A stretch of 61,723 nucleotides of DNA from Dendrobates tinctorius (GCF_039654945.1 NW_027361825.1:2916278-2978000); one strand, 5' to 3'. Counted from the first letter of the stretch, positions 20,975 to 60,623 are shown. Translations and numbers: made by a program. The notes: generated from the sequence alone by a model not told the origin.

Positions 20975-22495
<1,521 letters not shown>

Positions 22496-31500: not shown

Positions 31501-33721
31501 GTATACAGGCATTACAGCACAGGATCACAGGGGGGAGCAAAAGAGTATACAGGCATTACAGGACGGGATCGTAAGGAGGAGCAAAAGAGTATACAGGCAT
31601 TACAGCACAGGATCACAGGGGGGAGCAAAAGAGTATACAGACATTACAGCACGGGGGAGCAAAAGAGTATACAGGCATTACAGCACGGGATTGCAGGAGG
31701 AGCAAAAGATTATACAGGCATTACAGCACGGGAAGCAAAAGGGTATAAAGGCGTTACAGCACGGGATTGCAGGGGGAGCAAAAGAGTATACAGGCGTTAC
31801 AGCACGAGATCACAGGATAGGAAGAAAAGGATTAAACAGACATTACAGCACGGGAACGCAGGGGGAGCAAAAGAGTATACAGGCATTACAGCACGGGAAC
31901 GCAGGGGGAGCAAAAGGGTATACAGGCATTACAGCACGGGATCGCAGGGGGTGCAAAAGAGTATACAGACATTACAGCATGGGATCACAGGGGGGAGCAA
32001 AAGTGTATACAGGCATTACAGCAGGGGGGAGCAAAAGAGTATACAGACCTTATAGCATGGGACCTCACTCCTAATGTTATTGTTTGAATTGTCTTAACTT
32101 GTATTGAATTTATTGTCTGTACATGTCCCCGCTTAATTGTAAAGTGCTGCGGAATATGTTGGCGCTATATAAATAAAAATTATTATTATTATTATTATGG
32201 GATCGAAGGGGGGAGCAAAAGAGTATACAGACAGGACAGCACTGGATCACAGCTGGTTCTTTCATTGAAATACTTTTTTTTCCCGCTATATTATATGGGA
32301 GAGTCAATGGCATCATTGAGACTACAACTCATCCTGCAGAGAAAAAAAAATAAGGCTCAGAAAATAAGGTATTGCTCTTAGAGGAAGGGGAAGATAAAAG
32401 AAAAAAAAAAGTAGCGGAGGAAAGCCTGAGATGTGCAGATGGCTGTACGTGTCACTTTTGGGGTGTTTGTTCCCGTCCAGTTCTGCACATTGGGGTATAA
32501 TTCTGGTGCGATAACGCTGCTATGTCCTATGTTGCAGACACGGATTATCTGCGGTATCTGTTCCCCACCTATGTGAAGGCCAATCTCTACAGATTCTGCT
32601 ACACGCAGTTCGGGCAGAGCATCTCCATCTGCAATTTTTGGAACGGCAAGTGACGGCAGAGGATGAGGGGACGGGGGTGACATGAAGGAATTCTGACGCA
32701 TTCCCGACGCCCGCGGATGCCGCTTTCTGATGTCCACAAGGTGGCGCTGAGTGAAGTAGACATTAAGTGTTTTTTACTAATGGTGTTTTTTCCATTTTCA
32801 GATCCCCATCACCACGACATGTACATCAACAGCAGCAAGTTCCTGGCGCCTATAAACTCCGAACGGCCAGAGCCAAACACAACAGGTAATGTAGTGTGGA
32901 AAAGGCCAACTTTATGCCCCCATTCCACACACACAAATATACATGGGATCCCCAATATTTGTTTGGCAGAATAATCCTTAATTTCTACCGTACCATGTGT
33001 ATGCGTCATGTCAATAAGTAATTTTCTTACTTACAGAATGGAGGAAAAACTTCCTGCGCCTTCGGAGGTTAGTCCTCATCGGCGGTCCCAGTGATGGCGT
33101 CATCACCCCCTGGGAGTCCAGGTACGGAGGCGGTGGTCCGCAGTGTCAGTGAATTTGTTCCCGTGCACGGCTTTGCCGTCTCATGTTACGTTTTTTTTGC
33201 CTTTTCAGCCACTTTGGATTCTACGATGAGAATGAGACGGTGCAGGAGATGAGATACCAGAAGGTTGGTTCTTCCTGGAAATCTCCTTGGGGGTTTGTTC
33301 CCACCAATATACTGCAGGATGCAGTGGACCCCCATAATAAATAAGGAGGTAGCACAAGTGCCAAATATAAATTACTCACACTCCCATCATCTATGGGAGG
33401 ATGGGTGCTTGGTATTACAACAGATAAGACTGTAATCACACAGACACGCGTGGTGCGCCACGTTGGCTTAGCCCATCCTGAGGACACAAAGCTCTCTGTT
33501 ACACTGTAACGAGTCCTGCCCATGTGTGAGCAGCACATTTGGCTCCTTGTTCCCTAATGTTTCTTGTCCCACCTCAGGTCTACAAGGACGACAGCTTTGG
33601 CCTCCGCACGTTGGATAAGAGAGGAGCTGTCACGGTGTACTCTGTGGCCAACGTGGTTCACACAATGTGGCACTCCAACGAGACGGTGTACAAGGAATGC
33701 ATCGAGAAGTGGCTGACCTAA
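28575..33721 (+). CDS. PPT2: Lysosomal thioesterase PPT2 (palmitoyl-protein thioesterase 2), 294 aa
   Basis: Exons 28575-28730, 29094-29250, 30036-30131, 32538-32645, 32802-32885, 33037-33121, 33209-33263, 33578-33721 (885 nt). Signal peptide, then [13 protein letters not shown]; nucleophile CYSQGG; [11 protein letters not shown]; Asp in [11 protein letters not shown]; His in VHTMWH; ends IEKWLT*. The acceptor AG ending at 28562 implies an upstream non-coding exon. Confidence 0.95.
30249..30696. mobile_element. T2/Kolobok-type MITE, near-perfect 448-bp palindrome in a PPT2 intron
   Basis: TTAA|AGGGAATCTGTCACC...GGTGACAGATTCCCT|TTAA. Confidence 0.85.
31248..32250. repeat. T2-type MITE left arm with an expanded ~43-bp minisatellite
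   Basis: TTAA|AGGGTTTTTTCCC start; GGGGGAGCAAAAGAGTATACAGGCATTACAGCACGGGATCGCA units at ~31450-32250. Confidence 0.7.
32063..32196 (+). mobile_element. 5'-truncated L2-type LINE/SINE 3' end
   Basis: Tail TGTAAAGTGCTGCGGAATATGTTGGCGCTATATAAATAAA(ATT)n, nearly identical to 40273-40331; ATGGGA flanks both sides. Confidence 0.7.
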
Positions 33722-34914
33722 CGCCGCCGCTCCGCAAACCTCCCGTCTGCTCCATCATGGGAACCTTCTTCACCCTCCTTAATGCAGATGGATTCGAATC
33801 CATGACCCTTCCTGGCTCATCCTTGGCCGCCTCCTGCCATGAACTCTAGGCCTCCTGCCATTTTTACCTCCCGCCATCGGCCTCCATTGTGTAACCATAG
33901 GAGGAACACGTAGGCCACTTTTATATCCCTCCCCTAACTTTTTGGAAGGTAGAACGTTTTCTGGTTGTACCCCTTTTTCTAATGGAAAATTTAATTTTTG
34001 GGAAACCATTTGCACAATTTTGGGGGAAGGGTACAAAGTGGGATCCTCTACCTCTTCTCCTCCAATCCACTGCTGTTACATTATGGTCTATCAGGGTGCT
34101 TTTTACCTTTGAGGCGAACCTCGTAGCTTTTTACTAAGTGTCTGCCTGCCCTGAGCGTGGACTTTCGTGGTTTCGCCATAGTAGTCGTTTACATACCGTG
34201 TTCCCACCGATCGGATGTATGGATTGTCCAATTTCTTGCTATCACTCCAATGCATCTATATTTAAGGCTGCCGTTTTGTGTACACAGCATCCATGCGGAG
34301 AAGGAGAAATGCATAACTTCAGAAACCAATTACATAGTTTGTAGTCTGCAACTGCAGAAACGCATAAATCTGCATAGAAGCTGTATACGCAAAACGGTAG
34401 GGGATGGTGTTTTAGCTTTATTAACCAACCAATGCCAAAAAGGTACTATGGCCACCCTGCTTGTGCACGATTGGGGAGGGGTGGGCTCGCAAAATCGCTT
34501 TGGTAATGGTAGATGCAACAGAACAAAAACAAGAAATGGGGAAACCTGGCCGATCCGCTGCAGATGGCCGCAACGGGCGGCTCTGACCACAGTGTGGCCT
34601 CCTCTACAGGGTTAACCTGGAGCTGAAATAACCCTGTGTTTGCTGCAAAAAAAAAAAAAGCCGTCATCAATGCAATGTCCATAGAAGTTGGGGCAGCAAA
34701 TATTATTTAATTTTTTTACCTTTGATTGTCGGATTCTGGACTCGGGACACTCAGGACGTTGGTTATTTATGTATTTATAATCCCAAGGCACAAGAGCTGA
34801 CACTCCTGGACACGAAGGACGGCGTCAGCCCGGTTACGTCAGGAAGTTTACCGCCCCGTTAGACTTGTAATCGTGGTTTTTCTGCCTTTTTTTTAATTGC
34901 TGTTTGTTGTGTTC

Positions 34915-34920
34915 AATAAA
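34915..34920 (+). terminator. Probable PPT2 polyadenylation signal
   Basis: AATAAA about 1.2 kb after the stop, followed by GT-rich sequence. Confidence 0.5.
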
Positions 34921-35361
34921 ACATTTGTGCATTTGAAGTTGTTATATAAAGCGTGTGTGACCGCGACTAACCGTCATCACAGATCCGTCACCGGCAAGGA
35001 AATAATGGGACGGGGGCAAGAAATGACTGATCTGTGCCTTTATTCCTGAACAGTGGTCTATTGGTGATACCTGGTATTGCAGCCCAGGTCTATTAATTCA
35101 ATGAGCTGCAGTACCAGATCCAACCAATAAACGTGTGTGGCGCTGTTTCTAGAAGGAGGCGCCTATATTATAATAATTCTGTACAAATCCTTTACCTGCA
35201 CCCTTCCCACTCCCGGTAAAGCTATTGCTTTCTGTTCCAAGACGTATTACACAACGGGTGCCAGCCCTGCACCCAGTAAATAAAAAAGGTTACTTGCATT
35301 TACGTAAAAAATAAGCAGCATCAAAAACTCACTCAAAACTCAGCGTGGGAACGTAGCCTTA

Positions 35362-36974: not shown

Positions 36975-39900
36975 ACACACATCCACCGCCCTGGTATTAA
37001 CTCTCTACACTCAGTCCATATCGGCCCCTCGCTCCTTTCCTCTCCTATGTATAGCACTCACGCTCTTTTCACATTGCTAAACAGCACAGATCCATTCAGT
37101 CCCACCATTCAACATCAGAGACGCTCTCACAAATCACTTAACCATCTTCTCACTCTTTCTATCCTCCTTTTCCTAGTCGCAGGAGACATTGCTCCCAACC
37201 CAGGTCCCCCATGTTATAGAAAGTCAAACCCCCCAACTGCTATACTCAGAAACCCCTCTAATCTTATTAATATTCCCTGCATGCCATCTGTCTCTCTTAA
37301 TTGTGCCCTATGGAATTCTCGCTCAGTGTGTAACAAGCTCTCCTTCATTCATGACTTTTTCCTTTCTAATTCTCTTAACCTCCTGGTTCTTACTGAAACC
37401 TGGATCCAGCAGTCAGACACTACCGCTGCAGCTGCTCTTTCATACGGGGGACTACACTTCTCTCATACCCCAAGATTAGACAATAGAGCAGATGGAGGCG
37501 TTGGTCTGCTCCTATCACCAAAATGTACCTTTCAGGTTATCCCTCAAGTACCCTCACTTGTCTTCCCTTCCTTTGAGGTCCATGCTGTCAGACTCTACAC
37601 CCCCTTCTCCATGCGAGTGGTGGTGGTGTATCGTCCTCCCGGCCCCTCCCATCAGTTCCTGGATCATTTTGCCACTTGGCTTCCACATTTTCTCTCCTGT
37701 GACATCCCTACCCTCATCATGGGCGATTTCAACATCCCCATTGCTCTTCCCCTCTCCCCATCTGCTTCTCACCTTTTATCTCTAACCTCCTCGTTTGGCC
37801 TTTTGCAGCTTACTAATTCTCCAACGCATGAAGACGGTAACTCCCTCGACTTGGTCTTCTCTCGGCTTTGTGCAGTGGATGATTTTGCAAACTCCCCTCT
37901 CCCGCTCTCTGACCACAACCTTCTTTCATTCTCTATCAAGAACTACCAGGCTGCTCAGGTCACCCCCACTGTCCATATTTATAGAAACATACAGGCCATT
38001 AACACCCAGAAACTTATGAAGAACTTGCAGTCTTCATTGGCCCCTATCTCCTCCCTCTCATGTCCTGATTCTGCACTGAAGTATTACAATGAAACACTTC
38101 AAAGTGCCCTGGATGAATTTGCACCCCCTATAAATAGAACACCACAACGCAGACGGCGACAACCCTGGCACACCCTGCAAACATGTTTCCTGCAGCGGTG
38201 CTCCAGGTGCGCCGAACGTCTGTGGAGAAAATCCAACCTACCCGAAGATTTCATCCATTATAAGTTTATGCTTCGAACATATAACACTGCCCTTCACCTC
38301 TCAAAACAAACCTATTTCAACACCCTCATCACCTCACTGTCCAATAACCCGAAACGTCTTTGACACTTTTCATTCTCAACCCAAGAGTACAGGCCCCAAC
38401 CACGGAGCTCCGAGCTGACGATCTGGCCAATTGCTTCAAAGAAAAAATTGACAAGATCTGACAGGAAATTATCTCCCAATCACCTCATACCATGCACTGT
38501 CCTCCCTCCCCCACTGCATCTAGCTCACTCTCTGATTTTGAATCAGTCACAGAGGAAGAAGTAAGCAGGCTCCTTGCATCTTCTCGTCCAACCACTTGCA
38601 CCAGTGACCCATTTCCGTCACATCTCCTCCAGTCCCTTTCCCCTGCTGTCACTCCTCACCTAACTAAAATATTTAACCTCTCTCTCTCTTCTGGTATCTT
38701 TCCCTCCTCATTTAAGCATGCCATCATACATCCACTACTTAAAAAAACCATCCCTCGACCAAAACCGTGCCGCTAACTATAGACCTGCCTCTAATCTTCC
38801 CTTCATCTCTAAACTCCTGGAACGCCTGGTCCACTCCCGCCTTATCCGCTATCTCTTTGATAACTCTCTTCTCGCCCCTCTCCAATCCGGTTTCCGCTCT
38901 TTACACTCTATTGAAACTGACCTCACTAAAGTCTCTAATGATCTACTAACAGCTAGATCAAATGGTCATTACTCCATGCTAATTCTCTTGGATCTCTCTG
39001 CAGCATTCGACACTGTGGATCATCAGCTCCTCCTAGCTATGCTCCGTTCCATTGGCCTCAAGGACACCGTTCTCTCCTGGTTCTCCTCCTATCTCTCTGA
39101 CCGCTCCTTTACTGTATCTTTTGCCGGTTCCTCCTCCTCTCACCTTCCCCTTACTGTTGGGGTTCCTCAAGGATCGGTTCTAGGCCCCCTCCTCTTCTCC
39201 TTGTACATTGCCCCTATTGGTCAAACAATCAGTAGATTTGGTTTCCAGTACCATCTCTATGCTGATGACACCCAATTATACACTTCTTCTCCTAACATCA
39301 CGCCAGCCTTTCTAGAAAACACCGACGATTGTCTAAACGCTGTGTCTAACATCATATCCTCACTATATCTGAAACTGAACCTGTCAAAGACTGAACTCCT
39401 TGTGTTTCCTCCCGCTACTAATGTACCTATACCCGACATTGCCATTTCCGTGTGTGGTTCGACTATTACTCCCCAGCAACATGCCGCTGTCTTGGGGTCA
39501 TACTTGACTCCGAGCTTTCCTTTGTCCCCCACATACGATCACTGGCTCGCTCTTGTTATCTGCACCTCAAAAACATTTCTACAATTCGACCTTTTCTTAC
39601 TTTTGACTCTGCAAAAACTCTTACTGTTTCTCTTCATTCTCGTCTCGACTATTGTAACTCTCTTCTAATCGGTCTCCCTCTTACCAAACTCTCCCCTCTC
39701 CAATCTGTCTTGAACGCTGCAGTCAGGATCATATTCCTCGCCAATCGTTACACCGATGCCTCTACCTTGTGCCAGTCATTACACTGGCTACCCATCCACT
39801 CCAGAAATCCTCAATAATCAGAACCGCCCACTCCCGTCTCCAAGACTATACACGTGCTGCGCCAATTCTTTGGAATGCACTTCCCAGGTCAATACGATTA

Positions 39901-40331: not shown

Positions 40332-40776
40332 AATGTACTGTCTTTTAAAAAGTGGGCGTGGCCTGACATCTCACCTGTAGGAGTAGGTGGGACCCGCCCA
40401 AGTTAAAGATCTGTAAACAGAGTAAACCAACATCCCACACAGGAGGGGGGGGGTGGAGGAAAAGTTGTCTGGACTCTTCCAAAGTTTCAGTAACTTCACT
40501 GCAGCCTGAAAAGTTGTCATTAACCCCTGAGCTGCCTGACACCCATGTACAAAACGCACAGTCCTCTGCCGTTGCCGCCTCTTCCTGCGCCCTCTGGAAC
40601 TGAAAGCGTTAATATCCCCCATAATAACCTGAGCAGTGTGAAAGCTCCAGCCAAAAAAAAAAAATCCTCATTTGCAAAATCCGTTTAACTCTTTCCTCTC
40701 CAGAGCAAAAGTTTTAATCCCAAGGGGGGGGTTTCGAGCTAACAATTATCCGTGCTCCAGTTCTTCCTGAATAGGA

Positions 40777-40794: not shown

Positions 40795-41701
40795 GTGCTG
40801 CTCTTCTCTAGGAGAGGTGGTGGTAATGCTATTCTGCAGGAGATTAGATGAGCTATTTCCAGTATAATCTCACAAAGCTGCTCTTTAACCCCTTAAATGT
40901 CAGGGAGTTCACATAGCAAATATTTTCCATTTGTTACTATGAGTCTCGTCAGTGTGTATGGTGGGGGGTGAAAATTGATACATTGTAGTAGCAAACCTGA
41001 AAAAAAAACAACAACACACCTTTGTGTCAGGTGCTTCTACCTTGAAAGGGTTAAGTCAGGTAGTGTCCTGGGTGCACACCTCCACTCCTCCCTCTTGGGA
41101 GTTTCCTGGAAGGAGAGGTGAGCTGGCAGGGGAGGGTCTGTCCTGCTCCTGAGCACTCCCTTCTGGATACCAGTCTGCCATGGGGGCATAGGAGTTTTGG
41201 AAGGAGCTGTGACTAGTTCTGCATGTGCAAGGAGACCTAGGGGCCCAGTCAGTGCCAGCAACAGAGCACAGGTGGGTGGTGACAGCGAGGGGGCAGCAGG
41301 GGTGCTGGCGGTGGCTTACTGGTTGGCAGAGGACAGACTGGAGCAGCTGTAGGGGAATAGCAGAGGGTCTTGTATAGCAGAGGATCTGGGGTCACGGGAA
41401 CTGGGGAAATGTTTTAGGAGAAAGAATCAGTGGAACAAGCCGGTAATCCCTGACTGCCGCAGGCCTCCTCCTTGCCTTCCCTTCCTACAGGGTGTTGTGA
41501 CAGATGAGTCAGTGCTGTGAAAACGTGGACATGCTCCCCTTGTATGTTGTGTGCGAAACATTCAGCCCTGCGAAGGGCCGGTGACATGTAAAGCTCTGAG
41601 CATCAGGTCCCTCGGGGTTAAAAAGTTTTTTTGTTTTTTTCCTGTAGTTTTTAAAAAAATATTTACCGCTTAGGAATGTTTCTCGGTTTCCTCTTCTAGA
41701 T

Positions 41702-44444
41702 ATGTCTGATCTTTGCCGTCTCTGTTCCTCACAACTTCGTGGATCACGTCGTAAGTGGCTCTTCGGGGGCTCTGGATCTCTTCCAGCCTTATTTTCCCAT
41801 GTAGTAGGGACCCCAGTTCTACGCAATCCACCTGGATCATCCCCTAGACTGGGAAAAGGGAAAGGAAGGCCGGAAGATGCGGAGTTCATCTGCGGAAAGT
41901 GCTGCCACTCACTGAATGTCTACCACCGCTATGACCAGGTGTTGTCTCGTATGCGGGAGCTGTATGAGCAGAGGTCCATCCGCCTGGTGAAGGAGAAGGA
42001 GAAGCTTTCGTTTACCCTACGTACTATTCACGCTAGGGCCTGGGGGCTTCCAGTACCCGAGTACCTTGGGCATCAGCAAGACCGTAATGCCTATGGGTAT
42101 CGGGGTTCTTATAATGATCTCAGATCTCCGGGTTACTCTAAGTCTCGTAATAATTCCCTTTCTCCAGGATACCAAAATTCACGTCCAACATCTCCTTTTA
42201 CGGACCGCCCAGGGTCCTTGCATAGTTCTTTGGGTTCTTTGTCTTCAGGAACTCCTTCAAAGTCTTACCAAAATCTTCTGGACCATGACCGCTCAATGTG
42301 GGAGCATGAGAGCTGGTGGGACAACCATGACAAGGGCTGCTCTCATTGTGTCAGGGGCGAGAAGTGCCATTCTTGTTCCTCCTGGAGAGTTTCCGATGCC
42401 AATTACGAGTCTGTGTGTACAGTCCCTCGGAGGAAGAAGCACGGCCGAAGCGAAGATGACGTCTCTGTTCTTCTAAGGAGCAAATCTCTAGGAAGTGTTG
42501 GTGGAGAGAGTACCAGCAGTAAGGGTTCCCTCCTCTCCTTATCTGCCTCTTCTTTGGATTCTCTTTCTTACGCTGGTGAAGAAGGAGATGGAGTTGTGTT
42601 TTGGGAAGCAAAGTCTCCTTTAGCCTCGTCTCCGCCTTCATCATTTTCTTTCCCCAAACCAATGGTGGGAGAATTGTTGAAAAGCTTGAAGGAAATTAAG
42701 TATAGTCCCATTAAAACACCGACAAAGAGCAAGATACCCATCAGGGGTCAACCGAGAGTTACGGCGGGAAGTGTGGAGATACATATTGAAGATGACTATG
42801 AGGGGCCACGGGTCGAGGAACCTGTGCGAGACTTCGATGCTTACATGTGCATTGGGCCTGAGGTACGTGATAGTAGATTGGTATGTTGGAGTATAAGCAC
42901 ATATATGTGACTGTCTCGAGAGTTGATAGTGTTTCATGGGTCAGGTGGCTAATGGAGGGTGCAAAGAGATGAATAAGACTCAAACTTCCCTGGTCTGGCA
43001 TCCAGTTTGGTGCTCCATGGCAGCTAGACCAGGGCAGTGTTCAGTTCTGCACTGAAAATCCTCTGCCCAGTATCATCACGAGGCTTGGTCACCAGCCCAG
43101 CCTTGTGCATAAAAATGTGGACACTGTTGTCCTACTTTTTTCATGAGGTCCACCTTTGGTTTGATCGGTGAAAATTAAACCGGTAGAATAGTGACTCGTT
43201 ATCTAGAGAAACCAAATCATTTGACATGAAGATGCTTCAATCTCTACTCATTGGTGCAAGTAAATTCAACGCATTTTGGGACCAAGGTAATCCTGAAAGC
43301 TATTGCTGTTACCTTCACCTACTGATGAAAATTGAAGCATCTTGATTGCCTCCTCTTCTCTGGATAAGTGGCATCACTTTTCTACCATATTCTTTGTGGT
43401 TTTAGAAGTGTTGAACATGCATTTCGCCCCTCATGCCACCAGGGCAGTGATGTTGCTTCCTGATGTTCTGGGAGCAAGGAATGGCACTAACAAGCCAATA
43501 AACGAGGGCACGGAAATTAACTCTTGCCCTGGGTGAAGGAAAATCTGGTGGCGATGTGGCTGGTCTGTCTAGTCAGTCCATGGGTGGGCAGCAATATTAT
43601 CTGCCCAACTATGGCTGGCCTTTACAACAAAGTACAGATGTCTCGGGCGTGTCCCGGTCAAAGACAAACATTAAGCCAGACAACCTGTATAGTCTAAACA
43701 ATGGCAGGACTAACTCCACCCAGTGTGCCACAATATAAACTGTGGAATTACAGGGGAGGAATCCGCACGTGTGCCCGCGTGTGATTGGCATATGACACCT
43801 CTTCATAATTGCCCCATTAATGGAGGCAACATATCTGGGAGATGAGTCCATATTGGTGACGGTCAACGCTCCGGAGCCAGTGACTGAGGTGCGAGGCATT
43901 TATGAGGGATTCCACCTGCATCTTGTATATACCCTGATCCAATAGGAATGTCCCTTGTATAATATACGGCGGGGAATGAGGCGTCCTAGTAAATTTGAGT
44001 CATTCCAGTAAACGTGCAGAGAACTGTAATATACAGAGGCTTCTTTTTGGGTGGCTCGCCCTCCTTGGCAATGACCGTTTTACTGCCCGGCCATTAATAT
44101 TGTCACGTTGGCTAGTGGTGAGGGATGGTGTACTGTTAGGCGTAAGGACTGCGAGGAACTCCACCTGCGTAGTGGAAGATGTGCTGCCGACAATGACTTT
44201 TAGGCAGCACAGAAGATGCAAGATGCTCATGAATGAGTGATTGAGCATCTGCTGATCCCTACCATGGATAAATGGACCAATGACCTGTAAGGCCTCTTTC
44301 ACACTTCCGTTTTTTCTTGTCAGTTAAAATCTGCCAAAATGGCGGAAAGCGGATCCGTTTGTAACTGATGCAAACGGATGCCACTGGACCGTTTTTTTGA
44401 CGGATCCGTTGAATGCAGAATTTTAAAGGAACCGCAATCTGGGA

Positions 44445-44490
<46 letters not shown>

Positions 44491-47400
44491 ATGAATATTT
44501 GTTTCCACCGCCAGAAAGGATTTCAGGGTTAAATCCCCGGCTGACTTCCTTTCTCCGGCCATGCGGATCCTACAGCCAAAAAAAGCATTGCAGGGTCCGT
44601 CCAGGCATGCCGGCGGACGCAAACATTTTGGCGGATCCGCAAAAAAACGGATCCAACGGATGGCCATCCGTCAAGATCCGCCGGTAATGCAACTCAATGG
44701 GGGAAAAAAACGGATCCGCTAAAAAAATGGAGGATCCGTTTTTTTCAAAAACTGGCGCATTTTGACTGATGGTCAAAAACGGAAGCGTGAAAGAGGCCTA
44801 ACTGGCGTTTGGCCTGTGTGAAAGGGCTGTTAGGCTCCTGCCATGAAACATTCCCCCCCCGGTGGTCAGACATTCATCAGTCGTCCTTTAGGCTCTTCTC
44901 TGATATTAATGATCATACATGTTATACTTATCTCCGTATTCCTGTCCCATCTGAATTCCAGGTCTGCAAGACTCAAACATCTCGTTCGCTCCACATCCGG
45001 GAGACCATAAGCTGGCTACAGACACAGCTGAAGGCCGCGCAGAGTGGCAGCACTGAGTCACGGCAGCAGGTAAATACCCAATGTGTGATCGGTGGCTGTC
45101 ATCACTGTGCTGCTATGTGCCCGCAGTCATAATGACCCCAAATCCACAATGTGATGTCATCCTGTGGTGTATCAGTCATTGTACATGAGGGGGAAGAGGT
45201 GAGCTGTGATATCACTTATTGTGTATGGTGATCCTGTGTTACCTACTGTATATAGAGGTGTTATCAGTCATTGTACAGGAGGGGGAGGAGGTGAGCTGTG
45301 ATATCACCTATTGTGTATGGTGATCCTGTGTTACCTACTGCATATAGAGGTGTTATCAGTCATTGTGCAGGAGGTGAGCTGTGAAATCACCTATTGTGAA
45401 TGGTGCAGCCTGTGTTATCTACTGTATATAGAGACGTTATCAGTCATTGTACAGGAGGAGGAGGGGAGCTGTGACATCACCTATTGTGAATGGTGGATCA
45501 TGTATTATTACTGTATATAGAGATGTTATCAGTCATTGTACAGGAGGAGGAGGGGAGCTGTGACATCACCTATTGTGAATGGTGGATCCCGTGTTAAAAT
45601 TCAGTGTAATCTCACTTTTGATGATAATGAGGTGACTGATCTCTACAAAACAGAGTGTCAGAGAAAATTACAACATTTTATATTTTTTTAATAATTGTCA
45701 TTGCTTGGAAAAACTCTATAGCTTCTGTTTAGCACTGCCTATTGCTAGTGGCAGGATGAGTTACCCGAGAATCAATCAGTGAGCTCATTCTGAAGAGAGA
45801 GTTTGACTCTAATCTTCCCTCTTCTACTACTAGAAAGAGGAGCTGCACCTTTTGTTATGATTCACCCGAGATGAGCTCAGAAGAGGGAAGATTAGAGCCA
45901 TAAACTCCCATCAGAATAAGCTCGATGATAGATTTTCAGTTGACTCATTCTGCAGCTTGACAACAGACTGTGTAAAATAAAAATTATGTGATTTACAATA
46001 TAAATACCTAGAAAGTGAAGTTAGAAAAACATTTTTTTTTCTTTAAAGTGGTGGTCGCATCAGAATCTGAGATAACCCAAGTCCTATTTCCATCTTAAAT
46101 ATTTATAGAGGAAGCCACTCTCGGCATGTGGTCGTTTATACAGACTCTCCATTATATATATTCTATTTATATAATTGCCTTGTAATGTTTTCATTTCCTG
46201 TTCTGTCCAGATGTCACCGTATCCCAGAATTCCAAGAGGTGGAAGTTCACCGACTTCCATATTGGGACACCCAAGTGATGGGTGTCTCAATATGGAAACT
46301 GCTGGTGGTACCAACCTATTGCACGGTACCACCAGCGGAACACCGTCGTACCACACACTCGCTCACTCTCACACACATTCGCTCTTGCGCGGTACCACCA
46401 GCGGAACACCGTCGCACTGCACTTGCGCGAATTCCACGCAGACGCAGCTAGTCATTCGGCTGATCCTGGCGGCAGATGCGCGACGTGTCTACAAGCAGAG
46501 GAAGCCGGTCACGTTAAAGGGGTTTTCCAACGAACAAAAGTTCATTTTAAAAATTGTCTGTGTCTGACCGTGTACGGAGCATACCACATCTTGTGGACAG
46601 GGGAGGAAGGAAGCAAAAGACAATACTGACATTACAGCAGGGGATCACAGAGGATTCATTTTGTAAGGTAAACTTTTTCACTGACTGTTTTTAAACAATA
46701 TTTTACCTCACAAAATGTATCCTCTGCGATCTGCTGTAATGTCAGTATTGTCTTTTGCTTCCTCCCCTGCCCAGGAGCTGTGGTATGTTCTGTACACAGT
46801 CACACAGGGGTGAGAGAAACAGAACACAGGGGAGTAGACAGCTCAAATGGGACAGCACATGAGGGGAGAACACAGCACAGGAAGGAGACAGCAGACAAGA
46901 GGGATAGCACATGGGGTAGAGAGGTCAAAGAAGAGAGTACAGACGGGAGAAGTCAGCACATGGGGAAAGAGAGTGGATAGGTGGGTGAGCACATGTGGGG
47001 GGGAGAGATTCTCAATGCTGCAAAGCCTGCCCCCATGGTGACATTACCGCCCTCCCGATGCGACAGCATCGGGCCTCCATCTAGTAATATATATCAGTCT
47101 TGTCTTTAGGAGACCTCCCCTTTAAGGCTGCAGTGTTACATCTCCCTGCACTTGTTGGAGCTTTGGTTTTACTCTCGACACTCCTTCCCTTCCAGGACCA
47201 AATGATCGAACAGCAGGAACTAATCCGAGATTTGATCAAGAGACTGACGTTGAAGGAGGACTTCCTGGAGGTGGGCGCCCGCGCAGGTCTGACCTACGGT
47301 GGTCTATGGAATCATGTTATGGTCCACTGAGACTTATCCTCTAATCCTCAGGACTCGCTGAGTTTACTGCTGGCACTCCCTGTAGCCTGTGACCCATCGG

Positions 47401-50400
47401 GGCAACTTATTACAGACTTTGTTGAAAAGTTAAGGGCACGAGAAGATCAGATACAGGTGACTAACAATGACCCCAAATTAGAGACCATGACAGGGGGACA
47501 TGAGCAACACCAGAAGGCGGAGGAGGAAAAGGAAGCAGACACCGACTGATCAGTGTTACTGAAATTATTATGGTTTGATGTCTGTTTTGTCACTAATAAA
47601 CTATACGATACATCCTGCTGCGTCCTGAATGAGGATCAGGCTAAACAGTGACGTCAATCTGCAAATGATAGAGGAGAAATAACTTTACATCACTCATCCT
47701 GTATTATACCCCAGAGCTGCACTCACTATTCTGCTGGTGCAGTCACTGTGTACATACATTACTGATCCTGAGTTATATCCTGTATTATACTCCAGAGCTG
47801 CACTCACTATTCTGCTGGTGCAGTCACTGTGTATATACATTACATTACTGATCCTGAGTTACATCCTGTATTATACTCCAGAGCTGCACTCACTATTCTG
47901 CTGGTGCAGTCACTGTGTACATACAGTACATTACTGATCCTGAGTTACATCCTGTATTATACTCCAGAGCTGCACTCACTATTCTGCTGGTGCAGTCACT
48001 GTGTACATACATTACTGATCCTGAGTTATATCCTGTATTATACTCCAGAGCTGCACTCACTATTCTGCTGGTGCAGTCACTGTGTACATACATTACATTA
48101 CTGATCCTGAGTTACATCCTGTATTATACTCCAGAGCTGCACTCACTATTCTGCTGGTGCAGTCACTGTGTACATACATTACTGATCCTGAATTACATCC
48201 TGTATTATACCCCAGAGCTGCACTCACTATTCTGCTGGTGCAGTCACTGTGTACATACATTACATTACTGATCCTGAGTTACATCCTGTATTATACCACA
48301 GAGGTGCAGTCACTGTGTACATACATTACTAGTAGGAAAAAAAGGCCACTAAATTAACAATCCATCCAGCTCTATAGATGAAATTCCGTCCCAGTGATTC
48401 TAGTACTGATGAATAGATCCATAAGATCTGGTTTCTTAGGGCCTTGACTCGTTTTGACACTGTGGCCTGTCTGAGCAGAGAGAAGGGGATGAGCTGGCCT
48501 TACTCAAAAGCCAAAGAGAAACGGAAATGAAACGTCTGCAGGAAGAACTGACAGCGAGAGAGGAAGACACCGCACATCTGTCAAAGGTTCTTCGCGACAA
48601 TCAGGACATCATAACTGTGAGTGGCTCCCAGGGGGCGGGTCTATAACTGGCATTGCCTTTCAGCACTGGAATCTTGCCAATCAATATATCGAGTTTCTAT
48701 ATTCCTACTATATTCATTTAGAATTCTTCTTGTTTCGTCCTCTGCTCCAAAAACTTGCTAGCTGACGCCCAATATATCCACTACCACCTCTGCCGTTCCC
48801 TCAGGGGTTGTTGTCACCCAGCTTTTCTAATGCTATCTTCTATTTAATCATGGAGGCTCTGCGTGACATCCTGGTAGAGAAGGACTTCACCATCCAGAGG
48901 TTAGAGGTGGCCCTGGACTCTGCAAATCGCTCTGCAGCCTCCCAGGATGCTCTGCGCCTCTCTGCTCTGCGGGAGAAAGATGCCCTAATCGCAGCAATAC
49001 AAGGAGCTCTGAGCAGTAGCAATCAAGATGTCGAGGTGAGTGTGAGGGGCGTCCGAACCTCAAACCTCTGTGTAAAATATTATCTCTGACTTTCTCCAAT
49101 AGCGAACCTCACATCATGGATATCTCCATCTTTGTTTCAGGCACTCGCAGACTCTCTCTTATCCCAGGGACTAGATGACTTTAGCACCTCAGTTCCTGGA
49201 TTGTCTGCCCCTAATCCTCTAGTCTCCCAAATCCAGGAGAAAGGCCGTCTGCTATGCCAGGCCCACGCAGAAAATCAACGCCAGAGTGTTCATCACCAGC
49301 GAGACATCCAGGATCTACTGAATGCTCTTAATGAGAGTCAGACACTGCTCCAGGTGAGTCACGAGTGCTGTCTGTAATATAACTATAATACTACTCCCTA
49401 TGTACAAGAATATAACTACTATAATACAGCCCCTATGTACAAGAATATAACTACTATAATACTGCCTCTATGTACAAGACTATAACTACTATAATACTGC
49501 CCCTATGAACAAGAATATAACTACTATAATACTGCTCCTATGTACAAGAATATAACTACTGTAATACTGCCCCTATGTACAAGAATATAACTACTATAAT
49601 ACTGCCCCTATGTACAAGAATATTACTGTAATACTGCTCCCTATATACAAGAATATAACTACTACAATACTGCTCCCTATATACAAGAATATAACTACTA
49701 TAATACTGCCCCTATGTACAATGTAACTACTATAATACTGCCCCTATGTACAAGAATATAACTACTATGATACTACCTCCTATGTACAAGACTATAACTA
49801 CTATAATACTGCCCCTATGAACAAGAATATAACTACTATAATACTGACCCTATGTACAAGAATATTACTGTAATACTGCTCCTTATATACAAGAATATAA
49901 CTACTACAATACTGCTCCCTATATACAAGAATATAACTACTACAATACTGCTCCCTATATACAAGAATATAATTACTGTAATACTGCCCCTATGTACAAG
50001 AATATTACTGTAATACTGCTCCTTATATACAAGAATATAACTACTACAATACTGCTCCCTATATACAAGAATATAACTACTACAATACTGCTCCCTATAT
50101 ACAAGAATATAACTACTATAATACTGCCCCTATGTACAAGAATATAACTATTATAATACTGCTCCTATGTACAAGAATATAACTACTATAATACTGCCCC
50201 TATGTACAAGAATATAACTACTGTAATACTGCCCCTATGTACAAGAATATAACTACTATAATACTGCCCCTATGTACAAGAATATTACTGTAATACTGCT
50301 CCCTATATACAAGAATATAACTACTACAATACTGCTCCCTATATACAAGAATATAACTACTATAATACTGCCCCTATGTACAATGTAACTACTATAATAC

Positions 50401-53400
50401 TGCCCCTATGTACAAGAATATAACTACTATGATACTACCTCCTATGTACAAGAATATAACTACTATAATACAGCCCCTATGTACAAGACTATAACTACTA
50501 TAATACTGCCCCTATGAACAAGAATATAACTACTATAATACTGCCCCTATGTACAAGAATATTACTGTAATACTGCTCCTTATATACAAGAATATAACTA
50601 CTACAATACTGCTCCCTATATACAAGAATATAACTACTACAATACTGCTCCCTATATACAAGAATATAATTACTGTAATACTGCCCCTATGTACAAGAAT
50701 ATAGCTACCACAATACTGCTCCCTATATACAAGAATATACCTACTATAATACTGCTCCTATGTACAAGAATATAACTACTATAATACTGCCCCTATATAC
50801 AAGAATATAACTACTATAATACTGCTCCCTATATACAAGAATATAACTACTATAATACTGCTCCTATGTACAAGACTATAACTACTATAATACTGCCCCT
50901 ATATACAAGAATATAACTACTATAATACTGCCCCCTATGTACAAGAATATAACTACTATAATACTGCTCCTATGTACAAGAATATAACTACTATAATACT
51001 GCTCTGTATATACAAGAATATAACTACTATAATACTGCCCCTATGTACAAGAATATTACTGTAATACTGCTCCTATATACAAGAATATAACTACTACAAT
51101 ACTGCTCCCTATATACAAAAATATAACTACTATAATACTGCCCCTATGTACAAGAATATAACTACTATAATACTGCCCCTATGTACAAGAATGTAACTAC
51201 TATAATACTGCCCCTATGTACAAGAATATAACTACTATAATACTGCCCCTATGTACAAGAATATAACTACTATAATACTGCTCCTATGTACAAGAATATA
51301 ACTACTATAATACTGCTCTGTATATACAAGAATATAACTACTATAATACTGCCCCTATGTACAAGAATATTACTGTAATACTGCTCCCTATATACAAGAA
51401 TATAACTACTACAATACTGCTCCCTATATACAAAAATATAACTACTATAATACTGCCCCTATGTACAAGAATATAACTACTATAATACTGCCCCTATGTA
51501 CAAGAATGTAACTACTATAATACTGCCCCTATGTACAAGAATATAACTACTATAATACTGCCCCTATGTACAAGAATATAACTACTATAATACTGCTCCT
51601 ATGTACAAGAATATAACTACTATAATACTGCTCTGTATATACAAGAATATAACTACTATAATACTGCCCCTATGTACAAGAATATTACTGTAATACTGCT
51701 CCCTATATACAAGAATATAACTACTACAATACTGCTCCCTATATACAAAAATATAACTACTATAATACTGCCCCTATGTACAAGAATATAACTACTATAA
51801 TACTGCCCCTATGTACAAGAATGTAACTACTATAATACTGCCCCTATGTACAAGAATATAACTACTATAATACTGCCCCTATGTACAAGAATATAACTAC
51901 TATAATACTGCTCCTATGTACAAGAATATAACTACTATAATACTGCCCCTATATACAAGAATATAACTACTATAATACTGCTCCCTATATACAAGAATAT
52001 AACTACTATAATACTGCTCCTATGTACAAGACTATAACTACTATAATACTGCCCCTATATACAAGAATATAACTACTATAATACTGCCCCCTATGTACAA
52101 GAATATAACTACTATAATACTGCTCCTATGTACAAGAATATAACTACTATAATACTGCTCTGTATATACAAGAATATAACTACTATAATACTGCCCCTAT
52201 GTACAAGAATATTACTGTAATACTGCTCCCTATATACAAGAATATAACTACTACAATACTGCTCCCTATATACAAAAATATAACTACTATAATACTGCCC
52301 CTATGTACAAGAATATAACTACTATAATACTGCCCCTATGTACAAGAATGTAACTACTATAATACTGCCCCTATGTACAAGAATATAACTACTATAATAC
52401 TGCCCCTATGTACAAGAATATAACTACTATAATACTGCTCCTATGTACAAGAATATAACTACTATAATACTGCCCCCTTTGTACATATAATTCTGGGTTT
52501 ACTCTGGTCAGTAGCTCCTGTATGTGTGTTGCGCAGTGTCCGGGTCGTTCCCTGCACAGTATTAGGACCTCTGCGCTGTGGTGAGTTCCCCAGGACTTTC
52601 CTCTCGGTGTCGGTGCAGCTGGGAATCTGTGATCGCATCTCACATGTGAATGATTTCTAATAGCATTAGTGCCGGGCCAGTGACGCTTATAGACTTTGAC
52701 ACTCAGCCCTGAGTCAGTCAGTAACAAGGAGGCCTCTGAGTCCAGAATACAATGTGGCATCTGCAATATGGGAGGGAGATTTAGTTTCGGATTGGTTTTA
52801 TACAGTGAATCGCTTTTTTGGAAGTCCCATGTAAATGCTTGGTTAGAAGGATCTGGTAATTCATTATGTGTAGTGTAGCAGAACTGGGAGACCTAATCAA
52901 TGTTGTTTCAGTCAGTCTCAATGACGTGCTGTTTTTTCCTCCACCATGCTTTACACTGCATCTCTGTGTTTACATGGCTGTTGTGTAAAAGTTGAGCAGG
53001 ACGTCCGTAGATGGTAACATGAGTCTCAGGTTGGCAGCTATAGAGGGCTTTGTGGTATTTCCTTTCTTTACGTTGTACCTGTATGTGATCCATCTCCATA
53101 ACATTGTCCTTCACCTTCAGGAACAGCTGCAACATTGTAAGAAACGTCTGCAGGACGGGGCTCTGGAGCAGAAGATGCTGCGAGAGTCGCTGCGGGTGAA
53201 GGAGGGCGAACTGCAAGCAGAGAGACGGAGGCACAATGCTGATCGGCACCAAGTACAGGCCAAACTACTGGAACTACAAGACTCGGGGAGGGAGAAGGAC
53301 CGGACAACTAAGGTGAGGACCACACCACCCTAGATCCTGGTCCACGGTCACCTCAATGGGTGAGGACAGAACAGACTGTAACACCCCATGAACATTTTAG

Positions 53401-54417
53401 ATAGATCTGAGGTCACCACTAGGGGGAGCTCACTGCATATAGATTTATACAGCCACCACTAGGGGAGCTCACTACCTATAGATTTATACAGCCACCAATA
53501 GGGGGACCTCACTACATATAGATTTATACAGCCGCCACTAGAGGGAGCTCACTACATATAGATTTATACAGCCACCACTAGGGGGAGCTCACTACATACA
53601 GATTTATACAGCCACCACTAGAGGGAGCTCACTACATATAGATTTATACAGCCACCACTAGGGGGAGCTCACTACATATAGATTTATACAGCCACCACTA
53701 GAGGGAGCTCACTACATATAGATTTATACAGCCACCACTAGAGGGAGCTCACTACATATAGATTTATACAGCCACCACTAGGGGGAGCTCACTACATATA
53801 GATTTATACAGCCACCACTAGGGGGAGCTCACTACATATAGATTTATACACCCACCACTAAGGGAAGCTCACTACATACAGATTTATACAGCCACCACTA
53901 GAGGGAGCGGTCTGTATTCAGATTTATACAGCCACCACTAGAGGGAGCTCACTACATATAGATTTATACAGCCACCACTAGAGGGAGCTCACTATATACA
54001 GATTTATACAGCCACCACTAGAGGGAGCTCACTACATATAGATTTATACAGCCACCACTAGGGGGAGCTCACTACATATAGATTTATACAGCCACCACTA
54101 GGGGGAGCTCACTACTTACAAATATCCTAAGAATAGTTCATTATTTCAGATTTGTGAGGGTCTGACAACCAGCACCCCAATTAAGCATCCGTCACCAAGT
54201 CCCGCGTTCTCCGGAAGTAAATGGTGTATAGAACAGCACAGCGCTGTATTCTATCTAGTGGCTGTTCTCATGTACTGCAGCTCAGATCTCTCTCACAATT
54301 TACTCTAACTTTCTTGTCTTCTAGAAATTGCTGAAGGATGCGGAGAGCAGAGATCAGATCATCAAGAAGCTTCAGGAAAGACTGAGCCTGGGAGGGGGGA
54401 TGATGGGCACGCTGTGA
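41702..54417 (+). CDS. Myomegalin (PDE4DIP SMYLE/MMG8 isoform)-like coiled-coil protein, ~754 aa
   Basis: Nine exons, all introns phase 0: 41702-42862, 44962-45069, 47196-47270, 47352-47456, 48479-48616, 48856-49035 (or from 48805), 49141-49353, 53121-53312, 54325-54417 (TGA). The N-terminus CRLC...RKWLF...LFSHVVG...AEFICGKC...YHRYDQV and RVSDANYESVCTVPR resemble the recalled SMYLE N-terminus. SKIP motif at 42728-42739; later exons are coiled-coil-like. Confidence 0.82.
44291..44798. mobile_element. Harbinger-type non-autonomous element with internal (GA)n
   Basis: TAA|GGCCTCTTTCACAC...GCGTGAAAGAGGCC|TAA. Confidence 0.75.
45170..45595. repeat. ~90-bp minisatellite
   Basis: ATCAGTCATTGTACAGGAGGAGGAGG...GAGCTGTGACATCACCTATTGTG, about 5 copies. 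Confidence 0.75.
45745..45955. mobile_element. Degenerate palindromic MITE body
   Basis: CTCTAATCTTCCCTCTTCT / AGAAGAGGGAAGATTAGAG arms. Confidence 0.5.
46518..46805. mobile_element. T2-type palindromic MITE
   Basis: TTAA|AGGGGTTTTCC; GAAGCAAAAGACAATACTGACATTACAGCAG and its reverse complement. Confidence 0.6.
47695..48330. repeat. ~82-87-bp minisatellite
   Basis: ATCCTGTATTATACTCCAGAGCTGCACTCACTATTCTGCTGGTGCAGTCACTGTGTACATACATTACTG, about 7 copies. Confidence 0.85.
49376..52477. repeat. ~35-bp satellite, 3.1 kb, intronic
   Basis: TATGTACAAGAATATAACTACTATAATACTGCCCC tandem array. Confidence 0.93.
53415..54120. repeat. 40-bp minisatellite with CTCF-like core
   Basis: GATTTATACAGCCACCACTAG(A/G)GGGAGCTCACTACATATA, about 17-18 copies. 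Confidence 0.9.
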
Positions 54418-59064: not shown

Positions 59065-60623
59065 CAGTCATGGCCAAAAGTTTTGAGAATGACACAAATA
59101 TTATATTTTCACATGATCTGCTGCCCTCTGGTTTTTATGTGTTTGTCAGATGTTTTTATCACATACAGAAATATAATTGCAATCATATTATGAGTAGCAA
59201 AAGGTTATATTGACAGTTAGAATGAGTTAATGCAGCAAGTCAATATTTGCAGTGTTGACCCTTCTTCTTCAGGACCTCAGCAATTCTCCCTGGCATGCTC
59301 TCAATCAACTTCTGGATCAAATCCAGACTGATAGCAGTCCATTCTTGCAAAATCAATGCTTTTATTTTGTCTGAATTTGAAGGTTTTTGTTTGTCCACCC
59401 GTCTCTTGATGATTGACCACAAGTTCTCAATGGGATTAAGATCTGGGGAGTTTCCAGGCCATGGTCCCAAAATCTCTGTTTTGTTCCCTGAGCCATTTAG
59501 TTATCACCTTTGCTTTATGGCAAGGTGCTCCATCATGTTGAAAAAGGCATTGTTGATCGCCAAACTGCTCTTGGACGGTTGGGAGAAGATTCTCTTGGAG
59601 GACATTCTGGTACCATTCTTTATTCATGGCTGTGTTTTTAGGCAAGACAGAGAGAGCCCATTCCCTTGGCTGAGAAGCAACCCCACACATGAATGGTTTC
59701 AGGATGCTTGACAGTTGGCATGAGACAAGACTGGTGGTAGCACTCACCTGGTCTTCTCCGAATAAGCCGTTTTCCAGATGTCCCAAACAATCGAAAAAGG
59801 GATTCATCAGAGAAAATGACTTTACCCCAGTCCTCAGCAGTCCACTCCCTGTCCCTCTTGCAGAATATCAGTCTCTCCATGATGTTTTTCCTGGAGAGAA
59901 GTGGCTTCTTTGTTGCCCTCCTTGAGACCAGGCCTTGCTCCAAGAGTCTCCACCTCACAGTGCGTGCAGATGCACTCACACCTGCCTGCTGCTATTCCTG
60001 AGCAAGCTCTGCACTGCTGGTAGCCCGATCCCGCAGCTGAAACACTTAAGAGACGGTCCTGGCGCTTGCTGGTCTTTCTTGGGCGCCCTGGAGCCTTTTT
60101 GGCAACAAGGGAACCTCTCTCCTTGAAGTTCTTGATGATGCGATAGATTGTTGACTGAGGTGCAATCTTTCTAGCTGCAATACTCTTCCCTGTTAGGCCA
60201 TTTTTGTGCAGTGCAATGATGACTGCACATGTTTCTTTAGAGATAACCATGGTTAACAGAAGAGAAACAATGATGCCAAGCACCAGCCTCCTTTTAAAGT
60301 GTCCAGTGGTGTCATTCTTACTTAATCATGACAGATTGATCTCCAGCCCTGTCCTCATCAACACCCACACCTGTGTTAATGGAGCAATCACTGAAACAAT
60401 GTTAGCTGGTCCTTTTAAGGCAGGGCTGCAATGATGTTGAAATGTGTTTTGGGGGATAAAGTTCATTTTCTAGGCAAATATTGACTTTGCAAGTAATTGC
60501 TGTTAAGCTGATCACTCTTTATAACATTCTGGAGTATATGCAAATTGCCATTAGAAAAAATGAAGCAGTAGACTTTGTAAAAATTAATATTTGTGTCATT
60601 CTCAAAACTTTTGGCCATGACTG
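59065..60623 (-). mobile_element. Tc1/mariner element nested in LTR A, frameshifted transposase
   Basis: TA|CAGTCATGGCCAAAAG...CTTTTGGCCATGACTG|TA. ORF pieces 59834-60283, 59638-59979 (FSDES), 59436-59807 (FQHDGAPCH) and 59240-59470 (WPGNSPDLNPIENLW). Confidence 0.92.

Follow-up and report, generated by a model that had tools for sequence, protein, structure and literature searches.

What kind of gene lies at 41702-54417 on the + strand of a 61,723-nt stretch of the Dendrobates tinctorius genome (NW_027361825.1:2916278-2978000, the whole of which is called the window here), and is it frog myomegalin (MMG, the product of PDE4DIP) or a separate gene? In the literature, CDK5RAP2 and myomegalin make up a vertebrate family of two (e.g. 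PMC3575658), and an earlier note on this DNA had proposed a third member, short and stand-alone, with an EB1-binding motif. Taken as a whole, the evidence is best explained by a frog ortholog of an ancient unnamed gene, si:ch73-95l15.5 in zebrafish, which very probably is a third PDE4DIP/CDK5RAP2 paralog that represents the SMYLE/EB-type half of the family and would act like EB-MMG/MMG8/SMYLE. Established here are how the gene is built, that it is expressed, which domains it contains, its paralogy and synteny, and where its orthogroup occurs.

Phylogeny and distribution

A profile of four frog N-terminal domains, run against 1.84 billion representative proteins, returned 77 relatives that fall into short and long classes. 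The closest proteins were those of Dendropsophus (XP_069800326, which is 76% identical from end to end), Gastrophryne, Nanorana and Xenopus. Members of the short group are ~650-790 amino acids (AA) long, end in ...GMKQTL, KHTL or RDTL, and occur in sharks, ray, chimaera, bichir, teleosts (zebrafish si:ch73-95l15.5), coelacanth, lungfish, caecilian, frogs, turtles and many squamates; no bird, crocodilian or mammalian member was returned by the frog-profile search or by a turtle-seeded search. Myomegalin isoforms starting with SMYLE_N came from frogs, caecilian, axolotl, mammals and catshark, and a CDK5RAP2-type group comprised Scyliorhinus torazame CDK5RAP2 isoform X4, sturgeon and paddlefish. 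The cyclostome relatives were lamprey proteins of 906 AA and 2869 AA and a hagfish protein of 717 AA.

In a maximum-likelihood tree that was carefully built from the N-terminal domain (41 rows x 476 columns; supports are ultrafast bootstrap (UFboot)/SH-like approximate likelihood-ratio test (SH-aLRT)), the short proteins (99/98), the myomegalins (100/99) and the CDK5RAP2-type SMYLE_N proteins (98/94) formed three clades, each of which includes both cartilaginous and bony vertebrates, so that the split predates the gnathostome ancestor. The window protein was sister to that of Dendropsophus (95/89) within a frog clade supported at 100/100, and frog myomegalin fell inside the myomegalin clade. 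Forcing the frog genes to group with myomegalin cost 27.4 units of log-likelihood (lnL), with a p-value of 0.0036 in the approximately unbiased (AU) test. Both the short gene and myomegalin are present in the frogs Nanorana and Gastrophryne, the caecilian Microcaecilia and the turtles Gopherus and Emydura; the separate myomegalin was thus demonstrated through related frog genomes, and in Gastrophryne it spans 133 kb and carries Cnn_1N, zf-AD, SMYLE_N and CC_CDK5RAP2. On this phylogeny the window gene is not PDE4DIP but a third gnathostome paralog of the PDE4DIP/CDK5RAP2 family. The earlier suggestion of a separate paralog rather than the one-to-one PDE4DIP ortholog is thus borne out by the position outside the 100/99 clade, the AU test and the presence of both genes in the same genomes.

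The gene is also no frog novelty and belongs to a gnathostome-wide orthogroup that is already predicted in databases, for which we found no literature. Its members are listed as 'uncharacterized' or under automatic names that have nothing to do with the family (rootletin, cingulin-like, kinectin-like, NuMA-like and others), and the literature searched held nothing that named si:ch73-95l15.5, PF18615 or a third paralog.

Gene structure and transcripts

Between 41702 and 54417 on the + strand there are nine phase-0 coding segments, bordered by consensus AG/GT, which join into a coding sequence (CDS) of 2268 nt that encodes 755 AA with its sole stop codon at the end. The gene consists of a non-coding leader exon and these nine coding exons (a slash marks an exon border or a spliced joint):

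40996-41117, + strand: putative non-coding leader exon; 3' end at 41117 well supported, 5' end approximate (~40996-41025)
41118-41699, + strand: intron between leader and ATG exon, 582 nt, gt...ag
41700-42862, + strand: ATG exon; CDS from 41702, 1161 nt coding, 387 AA; ends CCTGAG/gtacgt; contig pieces over 41698-42860 with 0 differences
44962-45069, + strand: coding exon 2; contig joints 42862/44962 and 45069/47196 in 4 runs; tblastn with the Xenopus ortholog
47196-47270, + strand: coding exon 3; joints in contigs of 4 runs
47352-47456, + strand: coding exon 4; joint 47270/47352 in 4 runs
48476-48616, + strand: coding exon 5; ortholog alignment; NAGNAG acceptor; Dendropsophus ortholog one residue shorter at the same point
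48856-49035, + strand: coding exon 6; ortholog alignment; kept in all orthologs except the Xenopus gene model; weak tblastn match to shark CDK5RAP2
49141-49353, + strand: coding exon 7; ALADSLLSQGL... block; ortholog alignment
53121-53312, + strand: coding exon 8; ortholog alignment
54325-54417, + strand: coding exon 9; carries the stop and the conserved C-terminal tail ...GGGMMGTL

The nine-exon open reading frame (ORF) of ~754 AA described in the earlier note stands, as do its exons, its Cys motifs and its SKIP motif, each found where it had been placed; a polyadenylation signal follows at 54902. Use of 48479 in the NAGNAG acceptor 48476/48479 removes one Gln and gives 754 AA, which explains the earlier count. 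The 1161-nt ATG exon, however, is not the first exon of the gene as had been thought, since a non-coding leader precedes it.

Transcript contigs from 4 public runs (3 studies, 2 organisms) were aligned to 41460-47459. They cover exons only, with GT..AG joints 42862/44962, 45069/47196 and 47270/47352 in all 4 runs, and the contigs of the same-species runs showed 0 differences from the window. As the contig sets are just 40-66 Mb in size and spliced, they are transcriptomes. Spliced transcripts of the gene therefore exist; the first three coding joints are read directly in all 4 runs, and the remaining joints of the earlier model are supported by ortholog alignment. Matching contigs of 2389, 2403 and 3092 nt fit a short stand-alone mRNA and not the 7-8 kb message of myomegalin, and a zebrafish transcript contig of 3.6 kb contains the entire 781-AA ORF of the ortholog.

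The acceptor cctcttctag/AT ATG ends 2 nt 5' of the start codon, and the contigs carry 91-120 extra letters 5' of 41698 that are absent from 41460-41697, with contig depth zero over 41460-41659; together, the extra letters and the acceptor show that a leader exon exists. A donor, GGAGAG/gtgagc at 41117/41118, lies inside the sole upstream block that Dendropsophus, Gastrophryne and Xenopus share with the window, and none of the frames of the leader contains an ATG. As it ends in AG, the contig pieces align from 41698. The donor, the conservation, the AG end and the absence of an ATG point to 41117 as the 3' end of the leader. Another candidate for the leader, a conserved block at 40334-40430, was set aside, because the donor at 41117/41118 fits the consensus and is kept in three frog genera.

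The introns contain minisatellites, the largest with a 35-bp unit x 89 at 49382-52485 (3.1 kb, AT-rich, with strong negative GC skew) and others with an 86-bp unit x 7 at 47695-48314, a 40-bp unit x 18 at 53414-54115 and a 92-bp unit x 5 at 45170-45596. Numerous transcriptome contigs stack up over 44260-47060, which means that these repeat families are expressed or present elsewhere in the genome. Public gene models of the orthogroup are often wrong: the Gastrophryne gene is annotated as two calls (359 AA and the following 395 AA), the X. laevis model omits exons equivalent to 48856-49353, and the Nanorana model has 26 spurious extra N-terminal residues.

N-terminal domains

The protein is laid out as a ZAD-like module with a helix, SMYLE_N with a second Cys cluster, a SKIP segment, ~370 AA of coiled coil and a conserved tail. 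Its ATG exon carries these features:

41702-42040, + strand: predicted ZAD-like C4 zinc module and long helix, AA 1-113; Cys at 41714, 41723, 41891 and 41900
42338-42430, + strand: second Cys cluster and RVSDANYESVC.VPR core of SMYLE_N, AA 213-243, from conservation in 56 sequences
42728-42739, + strand: SxIP motif SKIP, AA 343-346, inside YSPIKTPTKSKIPIRGQPR

Pfam SMYLE_N (PF18615) matched AA 183-245 with 42.6 bits (E 8.1e-11), so that the search of this exon, which the earlier note had called for, gave a score above the gathering cut-off of 25 bits. Orthologs scored 38.8-97.2 bits (97 in shark), and whale myomegalin 334 bits. Across the 56 aligned sequences, from all clades, the window motif C222-x2-C225...RVSDANYESVC239TVPR is conserved, with C222 in 54, C225 in 50 and C239 in all 56, and with R229, V230, D232, Y235, E236, P242 and R243 each conserved in at least 90%; an SLD motif is conserved as well.

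The possible zinc site noticed earlier, CRLC...CGKC, consists of the pairs C5/C8 and C64/C67, which are conserved in 55-56 of the 56 sequences, and fold matches together with zf-AD hits in relatives now refine it to a predicted ZAD-like domain. AlphaFold2 with the 56-sequence alignment gave residues 1-113 predicted local distance difference test (pLDDT) values of 81-91 in 10-residue blocks, except in a frog-specific loop at ~41-60, and modelled a hairpin, a short helix, a second knuckle and a helix at 65-113; most of the remaining protein was of low confidence. The first eleven Foldseek ranks were all ZADs (Grauzone 1pzw: TMt 0.76, root-mean-square deviation (rmsd) 2.2 A; E 0.05 or higher), and ZADs were also on top with VIA-align (Z 7.6 and 7.5 over 76-81 residues). 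Pfam zf-AD (PF07776) exceeded its 28-bit cut-off in relatives, with 28.6 bits in the caecilian and 30.8 bits in the lizard short protein, 30.2 bits in frog MMG and 32.2 bits in whale MMG. The N-terminus is thus modelled as a ZAD-like C4 zinc module. ZADs form homodimers in a manner that depends on zinc (PMC12649048, PMC5081699), and a 2025 paper gives ZFP276 as the sole human protein with a ZAD-like domain (PMC12649048). We observed zf-AD above threshold at the extreme N-terminus (AA ~4-78) of SMYLE-type whale and frog myomegalin, and it also appears in the precomputed Pfam matches of mammalian myomegalin entries, human included.

The SKIP motif and the second Cys pair claimed earlier are both present, at 42728-42739 and as C222/C225. 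A motif of the form [S/C][K/R][I/L]P aligns in all 56 family members, with the P invariant. The 19-AA context of SKIP, YSPIKTPTKSKIPIRGQPR, is basic and Ser/Pro-rich with five K/R and no D/E, the residues around the motif are non-helical in the AlphaFold2 model, and motif and acid-free basic context are intact in all five frog sequences. Human MMG 1-389 binds EB1/EB3 via SRLP, and an LP>NN mutant loses binding; the same fragment binds AKAP450 and rescues CAMSAP2-Golgi attachment (Yang et al. 2017, PMC5626540). The mutagenesis primer in PMC5626540 encodes SPRGSR[LP]IPVKSS, which places human SRLP in the same alignment column as SKIP of the window.

Coiled coil and absent domains

The window protein aligns end to end with its orthologs from shark to frog, exons 6-7 included. 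A profile of the part of the short family that follows the ATG exon (389 positions) matched one collinear stretch in MMG, CDK5RAP2 and lamprey proteins with E 1e-19 to 1e-66, corresponding to ~AA 515-950 of the SMYLE-initiated isoforms; no reversed-sequence control matched at E<10. By these alignments, the homology to myomegalin and CDK5RAP2 runs past the first coding exon through the coiled-coil body. Scores were best for the CDK5RAP2-type proteins (204-215 bits; myomegalin up to 184). A C-terminal tail of the ...GMKQTL / KHTL / RDTL type, ...GGGMMGTL in the window, is common to the orthogroup. We also considered whether this tail is homologous to that of MMG8 (...IGGGEP...PKHAF) and dropped the idea, as the profile alignment ends ~250 AA before those tails and the two are not collinear.

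As the earlier note had reported, the coiled coil is short and no CM1-like exon is visible. Cnn_1N (CM1) had no match in the window protein, and a CM1-positive frog myomegalin isoform (Cnn_1N, E 1e-19) had no tblastn match anywhere in the 61.7-kb window. SMYLE-type myomegalin isoforms matched the first coding exon alone, and shark CDK5RAP2 weakly matched exons 6-7. CC_CDK5RAP2 (PF23246) is absent from the window exons and from the short-family proteins, which stop before this domain (~AA 964-1101 in myomegalin). Pfam scans of the window protein revealed no C2H2 fingers or other nuclear domains, and matches of single downstream exons to RUFY4, XLF_CC and Cep57_CLD_2 were rejected as sub-threshold coiled-coil noise. 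By its sequence features, the window protein belongs both to the SMYLE_N family and to the short orthogroup; it lacks the CM1, the CC_CDK5RAP2 and the long C-terminus of full centrosomin-type proteins and shares their coiled-coil body.

Neighbouring genes and origin

The gene directly upstream, on the same strand, is PPT2 in the window as well as in X. laevis and zebrafish, and the earlier claim that the neighbours differ holds.

32519-33721, + strand: last ~four exons of PPT2, the upstream neighbour; tblastn with zebrafish and Xenopus neighbour exons

The final PPT2 exon matched PPT2 structure 1pja alone (E 1.6e-12). Elsewhere, the downstream neighbours are an SLC44A-like gene (Dendropsophus) and a RING/B-box/PRY-SPRY TRIM gene (elephant shark); no SLC44A-like gene was found within 7.3 kb downstream of the gene in the window. 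In human, PPT2 and SLC44A4 lie at 6p21.3 and many TRIM genes of this type in the major histocompatibility complex (MHC) region (6p21-22), and PDE4DIP at 1q21 and CDK5RAP2 at 9q33 lie in classical MHC-paralogous regions. With PPT2 in the window and the SLC44A-like and TRIM genes in other species, this map fits a gene retained from the two rounds of vertebrate whole-genome duplication (2R), that is, a 2R ohnolog, that was lost in mammals.

Scyliorhinus torazame CDK5RAP2 is annotated with isoforms that start in the ZAD/SMYLE_N manner and bear SKIP, and these form a clade of their own (98/94) with sturgeon and paddlefish. A SMYLE_N-initiated isoform in shark CDK5RAP2 means that there are three SMYLE_N lineages, and that a dual-start layout with CM1 and SMYLE starts is not specific to myomegalin; this layout, seen in shark CDK5RAP2 and in a lamprey gene, is probably ancestral. 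A history that joins these observations, to which we give slightly better than even odds, is that the ancestral centrosomin-family gene had two promoters, one for a CM1 and one for a ZAD/SMYLE_N start, and that three copies remained after 2R. PDE4DIP would have kept both starts, CDK5RAP2 would have kept both in sharks and sturgeons and lost the SMYLE start elsewhere, and the third, in the MHC paralogon beside PPT2, would have been cut to an EB-binding SMYLE module standing on its own, which mammals, birds and crocodilians would later have lost.

A true third paralog could instead have arisen in an early vertebrate when the SMYLE part of PDE4DIP or CDK5RAP2 was duplicated locally or partially, rather than by whole-genome duplication. 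The gene does hold the ancestral middle part alone, its coiled coil matches CDK5RAP2-type proteins better than myomegalin (204-215 versus at most 184 bits), and the tree resolves neither the relationships among the three clades nor the cyclostome positions. All three clades, however, span cartilaginous and bony vertebrates and so separated before the gnathostome ancestor, short cyclostome proteins exist too, and the PPT2 adjacency, with SLC44A-like and TRIM genes in other species, points on the human map given above to the MHC region, a known paralogon partner of 1q21 and 9q33. We regard a local duplication as unlikely.

The surroundings of the gene contain several other features. A ~315-nt block at 34619-34933 (+), ~0.9 kb past the PPT2 stop, shares 72% identity with Dendropsophus and is kept in part in Xenopus; it may be PPT2 3' untranslated region (UTR) or a regulatory element under conservation. 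A long interspersed nuclear element (LINE) endonuclease/reverse transcriptase ORF (37047-39817, +) lies between PPT2 and the gene, and several Tc1/mariner transposase remnants are among the transposon ORFs at 6825-7280 (+), 21433-22137 (-) and 59240-60283 (-). Protein-like tandem arrays occur at 22945-24478 and 31447-32074, and runs of N at 84-369 and 465-864. Exons of a carnitine/choline acyltransferase-like (CRAT-like) gene lie at ~1800-5050 on the - strand; human CRAT is at 9q34, and the CRAT-like gene could be another marker of the paralogon.

Proposed function and alternative explanations

The likeness to EB-type myomegalin suggests a mechanism. The N-terminal ZAD-like module and long helix would probably act as a dimerisation unit, and the dimeric scaffold would draw EB1/EB3 through the SxIP motif SKIP, perhaps use its counterpart of MMG 1-389 to dock on AKAP9/AKAP450, and so link microtubule ends or lattices to the Golgi or the centrosome. 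As CM1, the part that activates gamma-TuRC, the ring complex of gamma-tubulin, is absent, the scaffold itself would not be expected to activate nucleation. For the window protein, EB binding, AKAP9 binding, dimerisation and localisation are properties that we infer.

Several points weigh against this picture. We found no biochemical or localisation paper for any member of the orthogroup in the literature searched, and the junctions from coding exons 4-5 to 8-9 follow ortholog alignment and not reads. The fold Z-scores are below 8, and Pfam zf-AD is below threshold in the window protein (16.8 versus 28 bits), most likely because of the loop insertion. The cyclostome sequences have no resolved position in the tree, and an origin by the vertebrate whole-genome duplications leans on human map positions. 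The possible AKAP9 docking is argued by analogy, from domain equivalence to MMG 1-389 and not from contact residues. Lastly, the frog clade is strongly accelerated, with a stem branch of 1.41, which narrows the strong divergence reported earlier to an anuran-specific acceleration; anurans also carry a 35-45-AA Ser/Pro/Tyr-rich insertion and have lost the SKSQSMPLDW motif kept by other members, so that partner binding, that of AKAP9 especially, may differ in frogs.

These anuran peculiarities, the long branch, the insertion and the lost motif, would also fit a protein that kept its fold and not its microtubule role, having lost AKAP9/EB coupling in frogs and serving, for instance, at some other place in the cell as a dimeric scaffold of the ZAD type. 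ZADs are otherwise known from nuclear zinc-finger proteins (PMC12649048), and SMYLE_N scores 42.6 bits here as opposed to 97 in shark and 334 in whale myomegalin. However, all five frog sequences retain an intact SxIP motif in its basic, acid-free context, all seven conserved Cys and the RVSD..YE..C.PR core are kept, the coiled coil and the C-terminal tail are conserved, and there are no C2H2 fingers or other nuclear domains, all of which makes such a loss of role quite improbable. That the gene is frog PDE4DIP itself, as a diverged one-to-one ortholog or a short internal-promoter isoform, is extremely improbable: SMYLE_N is otherwise known from internal-promoter PDE4DIP isoforms (PMC3575658) and the acceptor 2 nt before the ATG does show an upstream exon, but the contigs of all four assemblies stop 91-120 nt upstream in a leader without an ATG, PPT2 would separate any upstream PDE4DIP exons from the gene, the 61.7-kb window holds no CM1 or other myomegalin exon, frog genomes have a separate myomegalin with CM1, ZAD, SMYLE_N and CC_CDK5RAP2 (133 kb in Gastrophryne), and the tree and AU test place the gene outside the myomegalin clade.

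Implications

A third family member that is conserved from sharks to reptiles and present in zebrafish and Xenopus, the main non-mammalian models of cell biology, could mask or modify pde4dip and cdk5rap2 knockout phenotypes in these animals. If the three-copy 2R history is true, the gene would be a natural separation-of-function myomegalin, and would bring hidden redundancy into work on how Golgi and centrosome microtubules are organised in zebrafish and Xenopus. As a compact, CM1-free version of the EB/AKAP9 module (its binding being predicted), it may help to tell gamma-TuRC activation apart from tethering that depends on EB. A further suggestion of the data is that a ZAD-like zinc domain stands at the start of the SMYLE lineage; according to PMC12649048, ZFP276 is the only such human protein. 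Given the misleading automatic names in the orthogroup, one consistent name would help.

Comparison with known systems

The closest known systems are the EB-type myomegalin isoforms (EB-MMG, and MMG8 = SMYLE), which share with the window protein the predicted ZAD-like C4 module, SMYLE_N, the second Cys cluster, an RVxDxDYExxC.VPR core, an SxIP in the column of the validated SRLP and the absence of CM1; in both, the first coding exon ends in an acidic/aromatic ...[DE][FY]xP[LF], and the coiled coil is homologous over ~350 AA. In contrast to myomegalin, the window gene is in a separate clade and at a separate locus beside PPT2, encodes ~755 AA as opposed to 1116 to ~2500, and its first coding exon is only ~25% identical to frog myomegalin. 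The short protein is without the ~150-200 AA between SMYLE_N and the common coiled coil and without CC_CDK5RAP2 (PF23246), PF26710, Olduvai and the PDE4D-binding C-terminus, and has its own ...GMKQTL-type tail.

CDK5RAP2 resembles the window protein in the SMYLE_N/ZAD-type start of its shark, sturgeon and paddlefish forms and gives the best coiled-coil match (204-215 bits), but it has CM1, CM2, a body of ~1900-2900 AA and a clade of its own (98/94); mammalian CDK5RAP2 is not known to begin with SMYLE_N. The ZADs of Grauzone (1pzw), M1BP (7po9), Pita and vertebrate ZNF276 have in common with the predicted module the CxxC...CxxC pair of C4 knuckles, the beta-hairpin, the short helix and the long C-terminal helix, with rmsd 2.2-2.4 A over 76-81 residues, whereas the window module sits in a cytoskeletal scaffold without C2H2 fingers and has a much longer helix (AA 65-113) and an expanded frog loop.

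Among the orthologs of si:ch73-95l15.5 themselves, the anuran members stand apart by their fast evolution, the ZAD-loop insertion PPGSSPRLGKGKGRPED, the 35-45-AA Ser/Pro/Tyr-rich insert and the lack of SKSQSMPLDW, but the orthologs share with the window protein an end-to-end alignment, the C-terminal tail, PPT2 upstream and membership of one clade.

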